A DNA stretch of 44,548 nucleotides. Source: Pelomyxa schiedti. Lineage: Eukaryota; Protista; Evosea. Numbering within the stretch: the first letter of the stretch is position 1; the number at the start of each line of letters is the position of its first letter. Location: positions 1 through 44,548 of the forward strand of contig JAHLWZ010000383.1 in the NCBI GenBank assembly GCA_020536535.1, given 5' to 3'. The notes beneath the pieces are model-generated. The model saw nothing but the letters and a program-made list of their open reading frames with translations, searched no databases and was not told where the DNA came from. This document shows, in pieces, positions 35,657 to 41,962 of the stretch. The position numbers and the translations under genes are program-made.

Positions 35657-36781
35657 ATGGAGAGGTACGATTACCTGTTCAAGTTCATTATCATTGGTGA
35701 CGCTGGAACCGGCAAAACGTGTCTGCTGTACCGTTTTATGGAGGACAAATGTGTCCCACAATACCTCATTTTTGGCACACCATAAATTTTTGCGTCTCCC
35801 ATCCGAATCACCTCACCCTTCTCCTTTTTCCTTCTCCATGGATGTAACATTCTATTTACCTTTTTCCACACTTCAGTCAAGTCAAATTCGTCACACACTA
35901 TTGGCGTTGAGTTTGGCAGCAAACTTATTGAAGTGGGTGGAAAAACTGTAAAATTGCAAATATGGGTGTGTCGTTCGTGCTTCAAATATATATATTTTGG
36001 TCAGTCTTACACCAACCATCATAAAATCAGGACACTGCCGGGCAAGAGCGATTCAGGTACAAGAACTCTAACAAACTTTGTGGAAGAAAATAATTCAACT
36101 CTATAGAGCTGTAACTCGCAGTTACTACAAAGGTGCTGCTGGTTGTATACTGGTATGCCATTTTCGTCCATTTCCAACCGTCAAATAAGAGTTATTATAG
36201 GTGTATGACGTAACCAAGTGTGTTTGTTCAATCTCTCCTTGTCGGCATTTATATCTATTCGGGAAGGAGAGACACCTATAACAACATTTCTTCATGGCTC
36301 GCTGATGCTAAGTCACTTGCAAACAAGGATATTGCAACAGTTTTGGTTGGAAACAAAACCGATTTGTCCGATGTAGAGTTTCCCTTCCTGCTTTCCTGTC
36401 ATCTAATGCAACCTGAAATCAGAGACAAGTCCAGTTTTTAGAAGCAAGCAGATTTGGGCAAGAGAACAGTAACTTCCCCTGGATTAAAAATGTAGCATAA
36501 CATTCTGAAGATATGATGTACATTGAGAGCAGTGCATTTTCTGGTGAGAATGTAGAAGAAGTATTTTTAAAGTGCGCGCGAACCATACTTAGCAAAATCA
36601 ATTCCGGTAAGTCCCTACCCACACAATTTCATACCATTCAACACAAATCCTAGGCATCCTTGATCCCACCAAGGTATCAGGTGGCAAGCCAGCCGATGTA
36701 GTAGACCCCTCCACACCAGAAGCCAGCAACACAACCACACTGTCCCCCTCCTCGTCTTCCTCTCCATGCTCTAACTGCTAG
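35657..36781 (+). CDS. RAB4: Rab family small GTPase, Rab4-like (8 introns)
   Basis: [86 protein letters not shown]. Ends PCSNC*. Confidence 0.92.
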
Positions 36782-37110
36782 AGAGTATAGAGAAAATATG
36801 TTGACACTTATAACACCCACACTTCTCTTTGCTGCCTGGGCTTGCCCACTTGTCTTCGTTTGGGAAATATGGGAAAAACGAGGTGGTATGAAAAATACTT
36901 TTTCAACAGAAAAAACATGAAAAATATTGTGAAACTACTATTTATTTCACCACGTTTTTGTAAAATCGAGTTGTGGTAGGAGGGCATCCCAGTGGTGTTT
37001 GAAAATGTCCGCTGGTGTGCCAGTGTGTCTGGGGATAATTTCGTTACTGTTAAAAGTGAGACGAACTTTCTGATAAAGGTGTCGTGGTACACAAGGGTAC
37101 AACAATCAGA

Positions 37111-37216
37111 GGGTCATTGGGATAGGGGGGGAGGGAGGGGGGGGAGAGGAGGACGGAGGGGTACCCCCTCCCTACTGCTCCTCCTCCATCACCCCCATTC
37201 CGGGGGTCATTGGGAT
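37111..37216. repeat. G-rich/C-rich imperfect inverted repeat flanked by 13-bp direct repeats
   Basis: GGGTCATTGGGAT at 37111-37123 and 37204-37216, with a central palindrome GGGGTACCCC between a purine arm and a pyrimidine arm. Confidence 0.6.
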
Positions 37217-37675
37217 TGTAACAGGTTTAATCCAAAATGCATACATATAGCCAACAGTGATGATTACATAGCTCCACGAAAGTTGTGCTGTTTATTTGTA
37301 CTCGGAGAAAAAGGGTCGCAGTGGTTGGTTGTTGTCAGTGGCTGGATCCCGTGGGTTCCCCTGCAGTAGAAAACCGTTAGTGATGGTTGCTACTACAAGT
37401 GCAAGTGCACTCATTTACCTTCATTAGTAGTTCGTCTTGCTTGTCGTTTTCGTGTCAGCGCCCAGTGTCGGCGGTCTGTTGTTTTTTTTATTCAGCCAAG
37501 TGTATGAGGAAGGGCTCCGTAAGAAGTGCTGGCCGTTGGGAAAGAGGTGATCGCCACCCTCCGTTTCTCCAATTGGGCAATTTCCCGCGAATTTCGACTT
37601 TTCTCGTTATCAGTTCCCTCACACGGGTGTTTACGAGAGAAGAAACAGAAAATAAAATTACACAACAAACACAAC

Positions 37676-39293
37676 ATGGAGGACTTCGAGCCAACGGGAG
37701 AGTACTTTGACATAGAGGACTGGAAATGCGAGCGGGATCTGCCGTCTCATGGTGTGCGCATTACGTTGCGGTTTGGAGTTGGGCCTGAGGCCCGCGCACA
37801 GGCTGCGGCCCTTTTGGTGATGCGAAGTGACACCGCCACGATGTCTGTGCCCGAGATCGACCTGGAGACCCCCGGCGGATCTGCGCGCTACGCGTCGGTG
37901 GCTACGACCATGAGAGAGGCCAGGGACGCCGTGGCGTCGTCTGGGTTCGCGGGGGGCGCGAAGTTTGCTCAGTTCCTGGCCGCTTTTGATGAGCTTCTAG
38001 ACGCACGAGCGCCTTTTTCCTTGTGCGTCGGGATTCCCTTTTTTTTTTTTGGTTTTTGTTACCCTCCAAGTGGCTAAAACCTGTTATTAGAGTGCTAGAT
38101 GATCCATCTGGGAGAAGCTTTCTGAGGTACAATGAGGATTACCCAGATCCAGATATTACCATCTACAAATATGAACGCACTTGGAGACAAAAGGAGGAGT
38201 TAGATATAGAGGACGACGAGGAAGTACCTTTTTTCGTTTTGTAATTTCCTTGAAATAAACAAATAAAAAGGCCACAGCCCTGGATATAGAGAGTGCCCTT
38301 TTCAGTCTGGTAGATCTTATTGAGCAGTCTAATAACATTGTAGGCTTTACCGGGGCAGGAATAAGCACAGGAGTAAGTAGTACTCTATAGGCAGAAATTA
38401 ATCTCATCTAGTCTGGAATTCCCGCATTCCGCACCACAGAAGGAAATCTAGCCGCTGTTTTCAGTGAATATGACGTCAGCGTTGAAAGTTATTCAAATTT
38501 CCTTGCATCGGAGACAGCAAGAGTCAAGTATTGGCAGTTAGAAAAGCATCTCTTTGACAGCTGCAGCAAGGCTGCACCCAACCCAGCACACAGGTTTTTT
38601 ACCTGTCTACATGAAAGAGGAAAACTTAGTGCTGTAATCACTCAGAACATTGATGGGTTGCATTCATTTGGCGTTCATGGACTCCCTAAAGAGAAGGTAG
38701 TGGAGCTACACGGATCTTCCATTACCACATCCTGTGTAGTTTGCAAACACAGAGTTCCCACTTCAGAGGTGCTTGGTGGATGGCACACTGAACCCACAAA
38801 CACCGAAAAGACACCCAAATCAGAACCAATAACGGGGAATAACCTGGCAGAAAGTACAAATGAGGTAGAAAATACTACTGCGGCAACACCAAACGAACCC
38901 CCACAAGAAACCCCAGCACTAGATACCCCACCTACATCCACAACAACCTCAGCCGCAGCGACTGTCACAGCGTCAACACCCATGGCCCCACACTGCTCAC
39001 TTTGTGGGGGGCCCTTGAAACCAGACACAATCTCATTTGGACAGCCACTGGACACCGCAGTCATTGAGCGGGCACAAACAGCCTTGTCGTCTGCAGACCT
39101 CGTCATCATTGTAGGGACATCCCTCACAGTAGCCCCAGCCAACAAACTGCCCGAAATTGCTCTTGACAGAGGCATACCCCTCGTAATCATAAACAAGTCC
39201 GAAACTCCCCTGGACAAACATGCAACACTGTCACTACAAGCTGACTGTACTTCCATTTGTGCCTCCCTCATGGAAAACCTCAAGTGGTTGTAG
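37676..39293 (+). CDS. ZPR1-like domain fused to Sir2-family NAD+-dependent deacylase (3 introns)
   Basis: N-terminal part: VMRSDTATMSVPEIDLETP..APFSLVLDDPSGRSFL..DPDITIYKYERTWRQKEEL (ZPR1 non-zinc-finger part). C-terminal part: FTGAGISTGSGIPAFR, PNPAH, ITQNIDGLH, ELHG, CVVC/CSLC, LKPDTISFGQ, GTSLTVAPA, IINK. Confidence 0.85.
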
Positions 39294-39388
39294 TAGTGAC
39301 TACTGGATCCTTGCAAGAAAAACCAACAAAGGTTTCTTTTTTGTGTGCAACTATTAACATTTTTGTTACTTTGGGAGTGTTCTGGAAC

Positions 39389-41962
39389 TTAGACACCATC
39401 ACAGTCATCTGTTTGGGTTTTGGTTTTGAGTGAGAACAAGTAATAACTGAGAGTGTTGCGTACCAAATGACACTGAATAGAGTGAAGATTTTCTTGCATC
39501 TTTAGGGGCAGTGCTGACGAGGTGTGGAGTGAACACTTTAATCATTTCCTGCTCAACTGCAATGACAGCATCACAAATTGTCCTGGGCTTGAGATTCGTG
39601 ACCGCGGAAACTATCTGTTTTGAGTTGAATTCGGTCAGTCAGGAATTCTAGAATCAACCCCTCTTCATATTGGACCCTGGTCCTTATGTTTGGTTTGTTA
39701 TGTAAGAGAATGAGATACCCTGATGGCATCCCTGAAGGGTGCGTGAACATATTCTTCCCACTGGAATTCGGAGACTTGTGGTTCTATAGAGCAATAGTAC
39801 ATACTTTCATAGGTGAAGTAAGGTCGTGAAGCAGGGGTAGGTGGTGGCGCCGGTTTGAACTTTGCCTTACTGGAGAAGATGGATTCCAATTCCGCTGCTC
39901 TTGTGGCTTTCATTGCAGCCAGTTCATCCATCTGATGGTTCTTATGTGCCGCTTTTTGTGCTTCCAATTCGCGCTGCTCCTGCATCAACTGATGACTGTT
40001 TCCAACAACCGAAGTAATGCACTTGGATGCTGATTGGTGATAATAACCAGCCAGATGGAACTTTCGGCAGCGTACTTCGTTATTGGAATCCAGCACAGAA
40101 ATTGTGAGGCACTCAGGCTGCTGATGCCTCACTTCTTCTTCTGTGGCTTGGGTGAGAAAAAATTGGAGAGAAGTCCTCATTGAGGGCTACTTGGAGGCGG
40201 TGTGAACTCAGCTTCCCTAAATGTTCCTTTGCTTTCTATGTTTAGAGGCAATTAGGACTGTTAATTGGCATCGTACTCTTTTATATCTTCTCTGAACTCG
40301 ATGCTCCACCATTGACTTTCCCATTGGTCAATCCATTGGATAAGTGCAGATTTATCAAACCTATTCTCATCAACTTGGACCAGAAGAGCAACTTGATTAC
40401 AAAGGTGAATGAGGTTCCAACGTCCACCCATCTAGATTCTTCTTCATTGCAACCACAATACAAGCAACAAGCCGCGCTTCACACAAAAAGTAATCTTTGA
40501 TACCCAGAAGATGGGCAACATTATAGGCATCATATGTGATTATATCTGATATGATTATTGTAGGTAATTAGGGGAAAGGAAAAACCAGGAAGGTGTAGTC
40601 TTCGTACGATACTATGCAAAAGTAAAAGTATGTTGGAGCCCCCAGATTGCAAATTAAGAGCATGATGCTAGAAACCATTGATAAAAGGAGGAGGGCAAGG
40701 TTTCCATTACATGTATAAGGATACTGACAACTACTCGTAAACGTCTACCAGTGAGCCTATACTGTCTGAGGTCAGCGCTGACCATAAGTAAAAGAGTTCA
40801 ACCTTAGGGCACATAGCGCGCCATACTACCTCTGGAATTGCCCACGCCTCACCGTTTATTCCTTTTTCTTTTGCAATGTGAAATGCAGTGAACTGAGGAA
40901 GAACACCGGAGTTCGCAAAGCTTTGTTTAGGTAAGCAGTCAATAATGTAAAGGACCATTGTGAACCGGCAGAACATTTTGACTGTAAAAGGAATTCCCAA
41001 ATACATGCAAGTAACGTAACTTAGGGCAACTGGGATTTCTGAAAAAATTGCTACATCTTGCTGGTTGAACGGGAGGTACCTACTAAGAGTCAGAGGTAAT
41101 TGGCACTTTGAGCAAAACGTACAAATCAACTTCAGTGGGTACTGTACTACGATACAAAACCATAACAGACCCAGTTCTAACATAGCCTATAAGATGCAAA
41201 ACGTGAAGAAGGAAAGTGAGCCTACAGTTTTTTAATGAACTTCAGCCAGAAGTATCTTAGGACAGGTTGAGTCTCTGGAGGGCAGCAAAGGTTTTGCTCC
41301 AATGCTTCACCAAAAAGCTTCACAACCTGCATAAGATGGAGGTTGGTGGGTGCATAAGCAATTAAATGACAGAAATAATTTTTTAAAGACCTCTTGTACA
41401 AAAATATACACATGTTCCGTGTCGTATTGCTTGATAGGACCTGACTTTTTCGCCTTTTTTTTCTTTCTCGAATGTCCGTCATCGGAAAAAGCTACCTGTA
41501 ATAAGTGTGGGTGACAGTTAGTTTCGCTAATTCAGTGCCTCCACTCACAAGCTGCAACAGCAACAACCAAACAACAACAGCAACAGTAACAGTAACAGCA
41601 ACAGCAACAGCAACAACAACAACAACAAAAAAAAAGAAAAACCAATAACAGAGTAATACCTCGCCCGCCTCTCGGTGACAACGAGGGCACAATGACCTAC
41701 CGCTCTCAGTATCCCACGACGCGCCAATGAGCCCACAATGGATGCATTTGCATTTGTTGTTGGTGTCGAGCGGGTCCACGCCGACGCCCCCGGCCTCCAC
41801 CATTGTCTTGGACTGCCGAAACCTGGACTCCTGTAGCTGCGACTCGCAGAGGGGCGTGCCCAGCCCCGAGCTGCGGGAGGCGGCTGCAAGTAGGACCTGG
41901 GATTCTGCTTCTTCTAAGGCCTTGGCGTCCCCGGATGAGAGTGCGCCAATGAAACTCGCCAT
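39389..41962 (-). CDS. Probable TAF1B/Rrn7-like RNA polymerase I initiation factor (3' end approximate)
   Basis: Zinc ribbon CIHC..WDTESGRSLCPRCH, then VLRYFWLKFI and ALSYVTCMYLGIPFT..CRFANSGVLPQFTAF, resembling the Rrn7 cyclin-fold region. Multi-exon. Confidence 0.6.
41570..41627. repeat. Intronic (ACA/GCA/GTA)n microsatellite
   Basis: aacaacaacagcaacagtaacagtaacagcaacagcaacagcaacaacaacaacaac lies inside the first intron of the TAF1B-like gene. Confidence 0.85.

Follow-up and report, generated by a model that had tools for sequence, protein, structure and literature searches.

Positions 37676 to 39293 (+ strand) of the window analysed here, a stretch of 44,548 nucleotides from the anaerobic amoeba Pelomyxa schiedti, place a region resembling part of ZPR1 directly before one resembling a sirtuin, which raises the question of whether the two belong to one gene and, if they do, what the combined protein might be for. 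To our knowledge, the ZPR1 domain is known only from ZPR1 itself. An earlier note, made from the letters alone, had proposed that the two parts are fused, that this architecture is not known from characterised proteins and that the product couples deacylation to eEF1A. The second of these points is consistent with our search of the openly accessible literature, in which no paper describing a ZPR1-sirtuin fusion was found. Surveys of sirtuins and chromatin proteins yielded no mention of ZPR1. The other two points are taken up below, starting with the gene itself.

Structure of the fused gene

Joining four exons on the + strand gives a frame of 1464 nt that encodes 487 amino acids and carries one terminal stop, and the fusion gene is single copy in P. 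schiedti. The domain matches given below come from the exons taken singly, which were joined only for this frame check. Exon 1 (37676..38022, aa 1-116) opens with the ATG at 37676, and it contains a Cys-free remnant of the strand that follows the ZPR1 zinc knuckle, the double-stranded beta-helix strands and the alpha-helical hairpin of a ZPR1 repeat; it matches Pfam jr-ZPR1 (E 4e-4) and residues 2-125 of a Mastigella protein (44%). Intron 1 (38023..38090; 68 nt, GT-AG, phase 2) lies outside RNA coverage and is placed from sequence, and it is also found in the NCBI model. Exon 2 (38091..38223, aa 116-160) supplies the DDPxG strand, a C-repeat-like YERT tail and an acidic linker, with a jr-ZPR1 match above cut-off (E 8e-7) and a match to residues 115-163 of the Mastigella protein. 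The ZPR1 domain is then connected with the sirtuin by intron 2 (38224..38270; 47 nt, GT-AG, phase 0), whose coordinates and in-frame join proved, on re-reading the sequence, to be exactly those given by the earlier note. Its acceptor is the first AG after the donor and is in frame, and retention of this intron leads to a TAA at 38242 and a 166-aa ZPR1-only product. The accompanying claim that the sirtuin has an in-frame stop upstream and no start of its own was likewise correct, the sirtuin frame being closed upstream by a TAA at 38256-38258 and lacking any ATG ahead of GAGIS.

The Sir2 domain is complete, as had been claimed, but it is not encoded by the one exon first described, since a 39-nt intron (intron 3, 38373..38411; GT-AG, phase 0, with two in-frame TAG codons and also present in the NCBI model) had been overlooked. 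Exon 3 (38271..38372, aa 161-194) encodes the first helix and strand of the Rossmann fold with the GAGIST motif, and exon 4 (38412..39293, aa 195-487 plus the TAG stop; Pfam SIR2 E 4e-30) encodes GIPAFR, PNPAH, TQNID (38640-38654), the catalytic His294 (38709-38711), CxxC pairs at 302-305 and 389-392, TISFGQ, GTSL and IINK. Between both CxxC pairs sits a Pelomyxa-specific Thr/Pro/Glu-rich insert of ~65 aa (38790..38990), which is covered by RNA contigs X2 and X3 and is absent or much shorter in Acrasis and in the family member P0037.

The single-cell RNA contigs, from three RNA libraries, match with zero mismatches and cover only 38731-39170 in exon 4. The support that the earlier note had hoped for over the 38223/38271 junction was not forthcoming, as no contig spans any junction. 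One contig begins with the tail of a template-switch adapter in + orientation, which indicates + strand cDNA. The NCBI gene model joins the same first exons and adds two further introns (~38594-38646 and ~38697-38753), which we rejected; they would delete TQNID, the catalytic His and one CxxC, and the last 23 nt of the second are overlapped by RNA contig X2 (38731-38960). The public annotation removes the active site in this way and needs correction.

Comparison with relatives offers strong support for reading the Pelomyxa locus as one fused ZPR1-sirtuin gene. The alignment with a transcript-derived protein from Mastigella eilhardi is unbroken across intron 2 and collinear over all four exons, and the spliced DP-to-GAG spacing is 67 aa, where that of the fusion family is mostly 57-90 aa. 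In other members the fusion is a single frame or transcript: intronless fusion ORFs occur in Acrasis kona (1353 nt) and Naegleria fowleri (1416 nt), and full-length fusions derive from transcripts in Mastigella, Thecamoeba, Physarum, Clastostelium, Rhizamoeba, Gefionella, Spironema, Telonema and dinoflagellates. The single fused gene of the earlier note is strongly supported by these single ORFs and transcripts together with the family-typical spacing.

Around the gene, a Ras-family (Rab-like) small GTPase gene lies upstream at ~36020-36790 (+ strand). A G-run followed by a C-run at 37122-37200 is a potential hairpin or G-quadruplex; Rfam returned nothing near gathering score, with only chance-level miRNA matches for this segment. 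At 37442-37503, 170 nt upstream of the ATG, lies the right-hand part (~60 bp) of a MITE-like dispersed repeat that is ~95 bp long, is bounded by terminal inverted repeats and has at least 40 genome copies, and a second repeated upstream element at 37323-37430 is 87% similar to another Pelomyxa contig (C346:48892-49001) and has raised contig depth. Converging on the 3' end of the fusion gene is a spliced neighbour transcript on the - strand (39385-39938; RNA contig X1, introns of 55 and 104 nt), in which no Pfam match was found.

Identity of the two domains

The description of exons 1 and 2 as a ZPR1 repeat without its zinc finger agrees with the Pfam jr-ZPR1 matches in both exons and with the lack of any CxxC before the sirtuin. 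Against a profile of canonical ZPR1 C-repeats only, the two exons scored 23.6 and 25.5 bits, compared with 2.1 and 8.6 for the best of 1000 shuffled sequences. The profile and structure comparison suggested by the earlier note for residues 1-165 gave the same answer, with mouse ZPR1 (2QKD) as the sole clear match of an AlphaFold2 model (pLDDT 91; Foldseek E 2e-11; Z 15.8 and rmsd 2.7 over 136 aa, the next best Z being 3.5). The fusion-family profile also matches 2QKD (E 6e-68), in an alignment that begins at the second zinc knuckle.

Compared with eukaryotic ZPR1/Zpr1 (2QKD; PF03367 + PF22794; TIGR00310), the fused domain has the same beta-helix and helical-hairpin fold and the SD..PELD, DDPxGxS and YERT motifs, but it differs in being much less conserved, in having an enzyme attached and in forming its own third clade. 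In the Pelomyxa protein the PF22794 fold is present as one repeat rather than in tandem, and the C4 zinc finger (PF03367) is absent; among the 38 two-domain proteins, PF03367 was found only in Chytriomyces. The IPxF zinc-finger loop occurs in none of 66 fused domains. Both types of hairpin tip are largely lost, with the N-repeat motif Q-x-x-R-[RK] found in 26 of 32 canonical N-repeats compared with 1 of 48 fused domains, and the C-type tip in 29 of 32 C-repeats compared with 5 of 48. The conserved positions that are left are core positions.

Our trees never placed the fused ZPR1 domain within the N-repeat clade. Its identity is 0.27 to C-repeats versus 0.23 to N-repeats, and its tail motifs are also C-leaning. 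A more specific derivation from the C-repeat, which received 99 SH-aLRT in the first tree, was lost under better models, and the trees cannot settle the placement of the fused clade relative to C-repeats (AU p 0.49). What stands, from alignments and trees, is a domain that lies outside the N-repeat clade and leans towards the C-repeat by identity and motifs. Pelomyxa also has an ordinary two-repeat ZPR1 on another contig (C136), so the fused protein is not a replacement chaperone. Elsewhere in the genome, a weak sub-threshold jr-ZPR1 match (E 0.015) was seen at C138:5732-5929 in a 413-aa frame, where the fusion-family profile has no match.

The Pelomyxa sirtuin scores 105 bits against PF02146, for which the cut-off is 24, and all sirtuin motifs tested are present (GAGxS, PNxxH, TQNID, the catalytic HG, two CxxC, FGE/Q, GTS and N). 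The NAD-binding motifs, catalytic His and zinc cysteines that had been called intact are indeed so, with His294, the Q, N and D of TQNID, the PNxxH His and four zinc-binding Cys in place. The catalytic His, the PNxxH His and the Asn and Asp of TQNID are invariant in all 56 family members. The Asp of GIPDFR is replaced by A, P or S in every one of the 55 scored members, compared with its presence in 274 of 282 scored non-fusion relatives; class III enzymes, Sir2Af1 (GIPTFR) among them, likewise lack it. The Tyr-x-x-Arg pair with which the class III desuccinylases SIRT5 and CobB line the acyl pocket is absent too, since the residues that we take to be its equivalents, by a motif-based mapping to SIRT5, are E and L in Pelomyxa and K/H and L in the family, which may point to neutral acyl groups. 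The fold of the Mastigella orthologue matches the Sir2Af and Sir2Tm deacylases (TM by target ~0.87).

The nearest relatives of the sirtuin are prokaryotic (40-46% identity), and in the tree the fusion sirtuins nest among bacterial enzymes with a TISFGQ-type motif, apart from a class I-like Chytriomyces/L005 group and not with SIRT1-3 of class I. The best PDB and NCBIfam matches are Sir2Af, Sir2Tm and CobB-archaeal types, all under cut-off, that of the class U model PRK14138 included, and set beside a tree that contains no named class U reference. Compared with class U-like sirtuins (Sir2Tm, Sir2Af1/2; NF001753, NF040867), the fold, the NAD-binding and catalytic motifs and the four-Cys zinc module are alike, and an uncharacterised bacterial group with a [KR]PxT[IV]SFGQ motif is singled out among these relatives. 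The fusion differs from the prokaryotic enzymes in being eukaryotic, in having introns and an N-terminal ZPR1 domain, and in reading GIP[APS]FR rather than GIPDFR. At 80 loci checked, no ZPR1 domain was found near the prokaryotic relatives. The closely related sirtuins include bacterial fusions of a urea transporter with Sir2 (P0142 and relatives). The sirtuin repertoire of Pelomyxa is strongly expanded, with 37 SIR2 matches on ~27 contigs.

Distribution and origin of ZPR1-sirtuin fusions

A profile search of 1.84 billion representatives gave ~35 clusters (50% identity) matching through both domains. Around 55 related proteins have the ZPR1-sirtuin architecture, with 56 rows in the tree after later matches, and the top two-domain matches contain jr-ZPR1 in 34 of 38 cases and SIR2 in all 38. 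Members come from Amoebozoa (Pelomyxa, Mastigella, Thecamoeba, Balamuthia, Physarum, Clastostelium and Rhizamoeba), Heterolobosea (two Naegleria, Willaertia and Acrasis), the malawimonad Gefionella, the hemimastigote Spironema, Telonema and the dinoflagellates Effrenium, Biecheleria and Polykrikos. The ESM Atlas held no cluster with this architecture, and a word-seeded search with the N-domain of P0037 recovered only P0037 itself. Some members depart from the basic layout: P0145 has an additional N-terminal zf-UBP, P0147 has an amine oxidase in front (in one automatic ORF call), and dinoflagellate-type members (P0155, P0160, P0174 and P0271) have a ~190-aa C-terminal extension that has no Pfam match.

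The closest relative of the Pelomyxa fusion is the M. eilhardi protein, and the two are sisters in the ZPR1 and sirtuin trees alike. Across the family, the fused ZPR1 domains group in a single clade (100/99), and the sirtuin domains attached to them do likewise (89/79; 87 in another tree). These trees are most simply read as a single ancient event that joined a eukaryotic ZPR1 repeat to a sirtuin of bacterial type. The species tree is not followed by Balamuthia with Gefionella, nor by Spironema with TSAR taxa. The family may be deep in eukaryotes, possibly dating from near LECA, or may have been widely transferred among protists, and the data are compatible with both.

A second such protein is found in Chytriomyces hyalinus and C. 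confervae, where a zinc finger, jr-ZPR1 and a sirtuin are combined (KAJ3242158.1 and TPX76443.1, unannotated as fusions). Both loci (L112:5001-6903 and L113:5001-6905) encode a complete ZPR1 C-repeat and a class I sirtuin. Like the protist family, the Chytriomyces protein has a single ZPR1 repeat, an acidic linker and then the sirtuin, but it keeps both CxxC pairs, its repeat is clearly a C-repeat (138.8 versus 88.3 bits) and its sirtuin resembles those of class I; a single sirtuin clade shared with the protist family was rejected (AU p 5e-7). Since one exon carries the ZPR1 tail, the linker and the start of the sirtuin, a merged gene model is excluded. By these comparisons, the ZPR1-sirtuin fusion arose independently in Chytriomyces.

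Both domains are of known kinds, and it is the architecture and the family that are apparently undescribed. The earlier note had allowed that the architecture might already be common and described; it is indeed widespread, and automatic Pfam annotation shows the ZPR1 and SIR2 pair on several public proteins, but it appears not to have been described. Described parallels are SIR8 with CAP-C (PMC9486876) and AcSir2 of Acanthamoeba with YEATS (PMC7376869), which likewise carry an accessory domain on an intact sirtuin, presumably for targeting. They differ in the partner domain and in belonging to sirtuin class IV, and neither paper mentions ZPR1.

Possible roles of the fused protein

The gene structure, both domain identities, the intact catalytic motifs, the wide distribution and the one origin are firm ground from which function can be considered. 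Here, we lean modestly towards an active deacylase on which the ZPR1 domain is docked as a repurposed interaction module that does not use the known grip on eEF1A. The gene product is predicted to be a soluble NAD+-dependent protein-lysine deacylase and, since it has no N-terminal leader, it is probably cytosolic or nuclear. NAD+ would be bound in the Rossmann cleft and His294 used to remove an acetyl or other neutral acyl group. The ZPR1-derived domain would pack against the sirtuin core to form one rigid unit with it and, by analogy with the N-terminal domains of Sir2 and SIRT1, may act as a repurposed protein-binding module that picks the substrate or partner and tunes activity, leaving unused the zinc-finger and hairpin-tip surfaces with which ZPR1 grips eEF1A. 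An AlphaFold2 model of the full-length Mastigella protein (pLDDT 91, pTM 0.84 over 432 aa) has a pTM above that expected for two freely moving domains, which suggests a fixed domain arrangement. The Atlas model of the Acrasis protein has a pTM of only 0.59, which counts against a docked geometry, and the family-wide loss of the GIPDFR Asp also counts against the deacylase reading. Arbitrary co-option of the ZPR1 domain is harder to reconcile with the independent Chytriomyces fusion, which suggests a link to the native ZPR1 pathway.

Closer to the coupling proposed in the earlier note, the ZPR1 domain may still recognise eEF1A or EFL, perhaps in a non-native or chaperone-bound state, with the sirtuin deacylating that GTPase and the level of NAD+ thereby coupled to translation-factor biogenesis or activity. 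We regard this as possible and rather doubtful, and our findings weaken the original claim. ZPR1 repeats have been joined to sirtuins twice independently, and eEF1A is the only established conserved ZPR1 client (PMC11790920, PMC10869706). However, Zpr1 uses a zinc finger together with a helical hairpin in folding eEF1A (PMC11790920, PMC10869706), and the fused domains have lost the former and largely lost both tip motifs of the latter. Binding to eEF1A is a property of the N-terminal half of ZPR1, and in pull-down no eEF1A is bound by the yeast C-half (PMC2132977), whilst the fused domain falls outside the N-repeat clade; the same C-half nonetheless supports viability alone (PMC2132977), and folding intermediates might therefore be what C-like repeats act on. 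The fusion is retained in dinoflagellates even though, as a group, these are reported to encode EFL and not EF1A (PMC4217694). A very long ZPR1-domain branch (2.67) in the subgroup with EFL-using dinoflagellates might be taken in favour, but Telonema, for which an EF1A sequence exists, sits on this branch as well, so the long branch does not track EFL. That eEF1A2 is reported to be a lactylation substrate (PMC10895275) fits a deacylated GTPase, whereas the normal ZPR1 elsewhere in Pelomyxa speaks against this reading. If a single substrate is to be named, an elongation GTPase is the best candidate, a tentative choice made mainly because the fusion occurred twice.

It is improbable, in our view, that the protein binds NAD+ without being mainly a deacylase, whether as an ADP-ribosyltransferase, an NADase or an NAD+ sensor that controls the availability of the ZPR1 domain. 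Such a role would suit the GIPDFR Asp being found in 0 of 55 members and the failure to reach the curated cut-off in any NCBIfam deacylase model, but the catalytic His, the Q/N/D residues, the zinc module and the FGE/Q substrate strand are conserved, the fold is that of the Sir2Af and Sir2Tm deacylases, and class III enzymes, Sir2Af1 among them, have no such Asp either. That the locus holds two neighbouring genes or a prediction artefact, with a ZPR1 fragment ending at the TAA at 38242 and a separate sirtuin, would fit the lack of junction-spanning RNA and the stop that the unspliced exon 2 frame meets shortly past the donor, but it is very improbable given a sirtuin part that has no start codon, an orthologue found undivided, as an ORF or a transcript, in more than 15 named taxa, the spacing and the collinear Mastigella match.

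These proteins define a sirtuin family that has apparently gone undescribed and whose catalytic core, of bacterial type, lies outside classes I-IV. Its span over Amoebozoa, Discoba, Malawimonadida, Hemimastigophora, Telonemia and Alveolata implies either deep eukaryotic age or wide transfer among protists. The family also provides a direct handle on the role of ZPR1's second, non-eEF1A-binding repeat, and is made testable by compact intronless members that model well (Acrasis, Naegleria). By Rosetta-stone logic, the repeat of the fusion in Chytriomyces hints at a link between sirtuins and the ZPR1/eEF1A folding pathway. More speculatively, and against the odds as we judge them, this may be an ancient enzyme family, possibly near-LECA in age and re-invented in chytrids, in which an NAD+-dependent deacylase is wired directly into elongation-GTPase folding by the ZPR1 pathway. 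If that is true, acylation state and NAD+ level would gate the biogenesis of eEF1A or EFL, and animals, yeasts and plants would use unfused sirtuins for the purpose.
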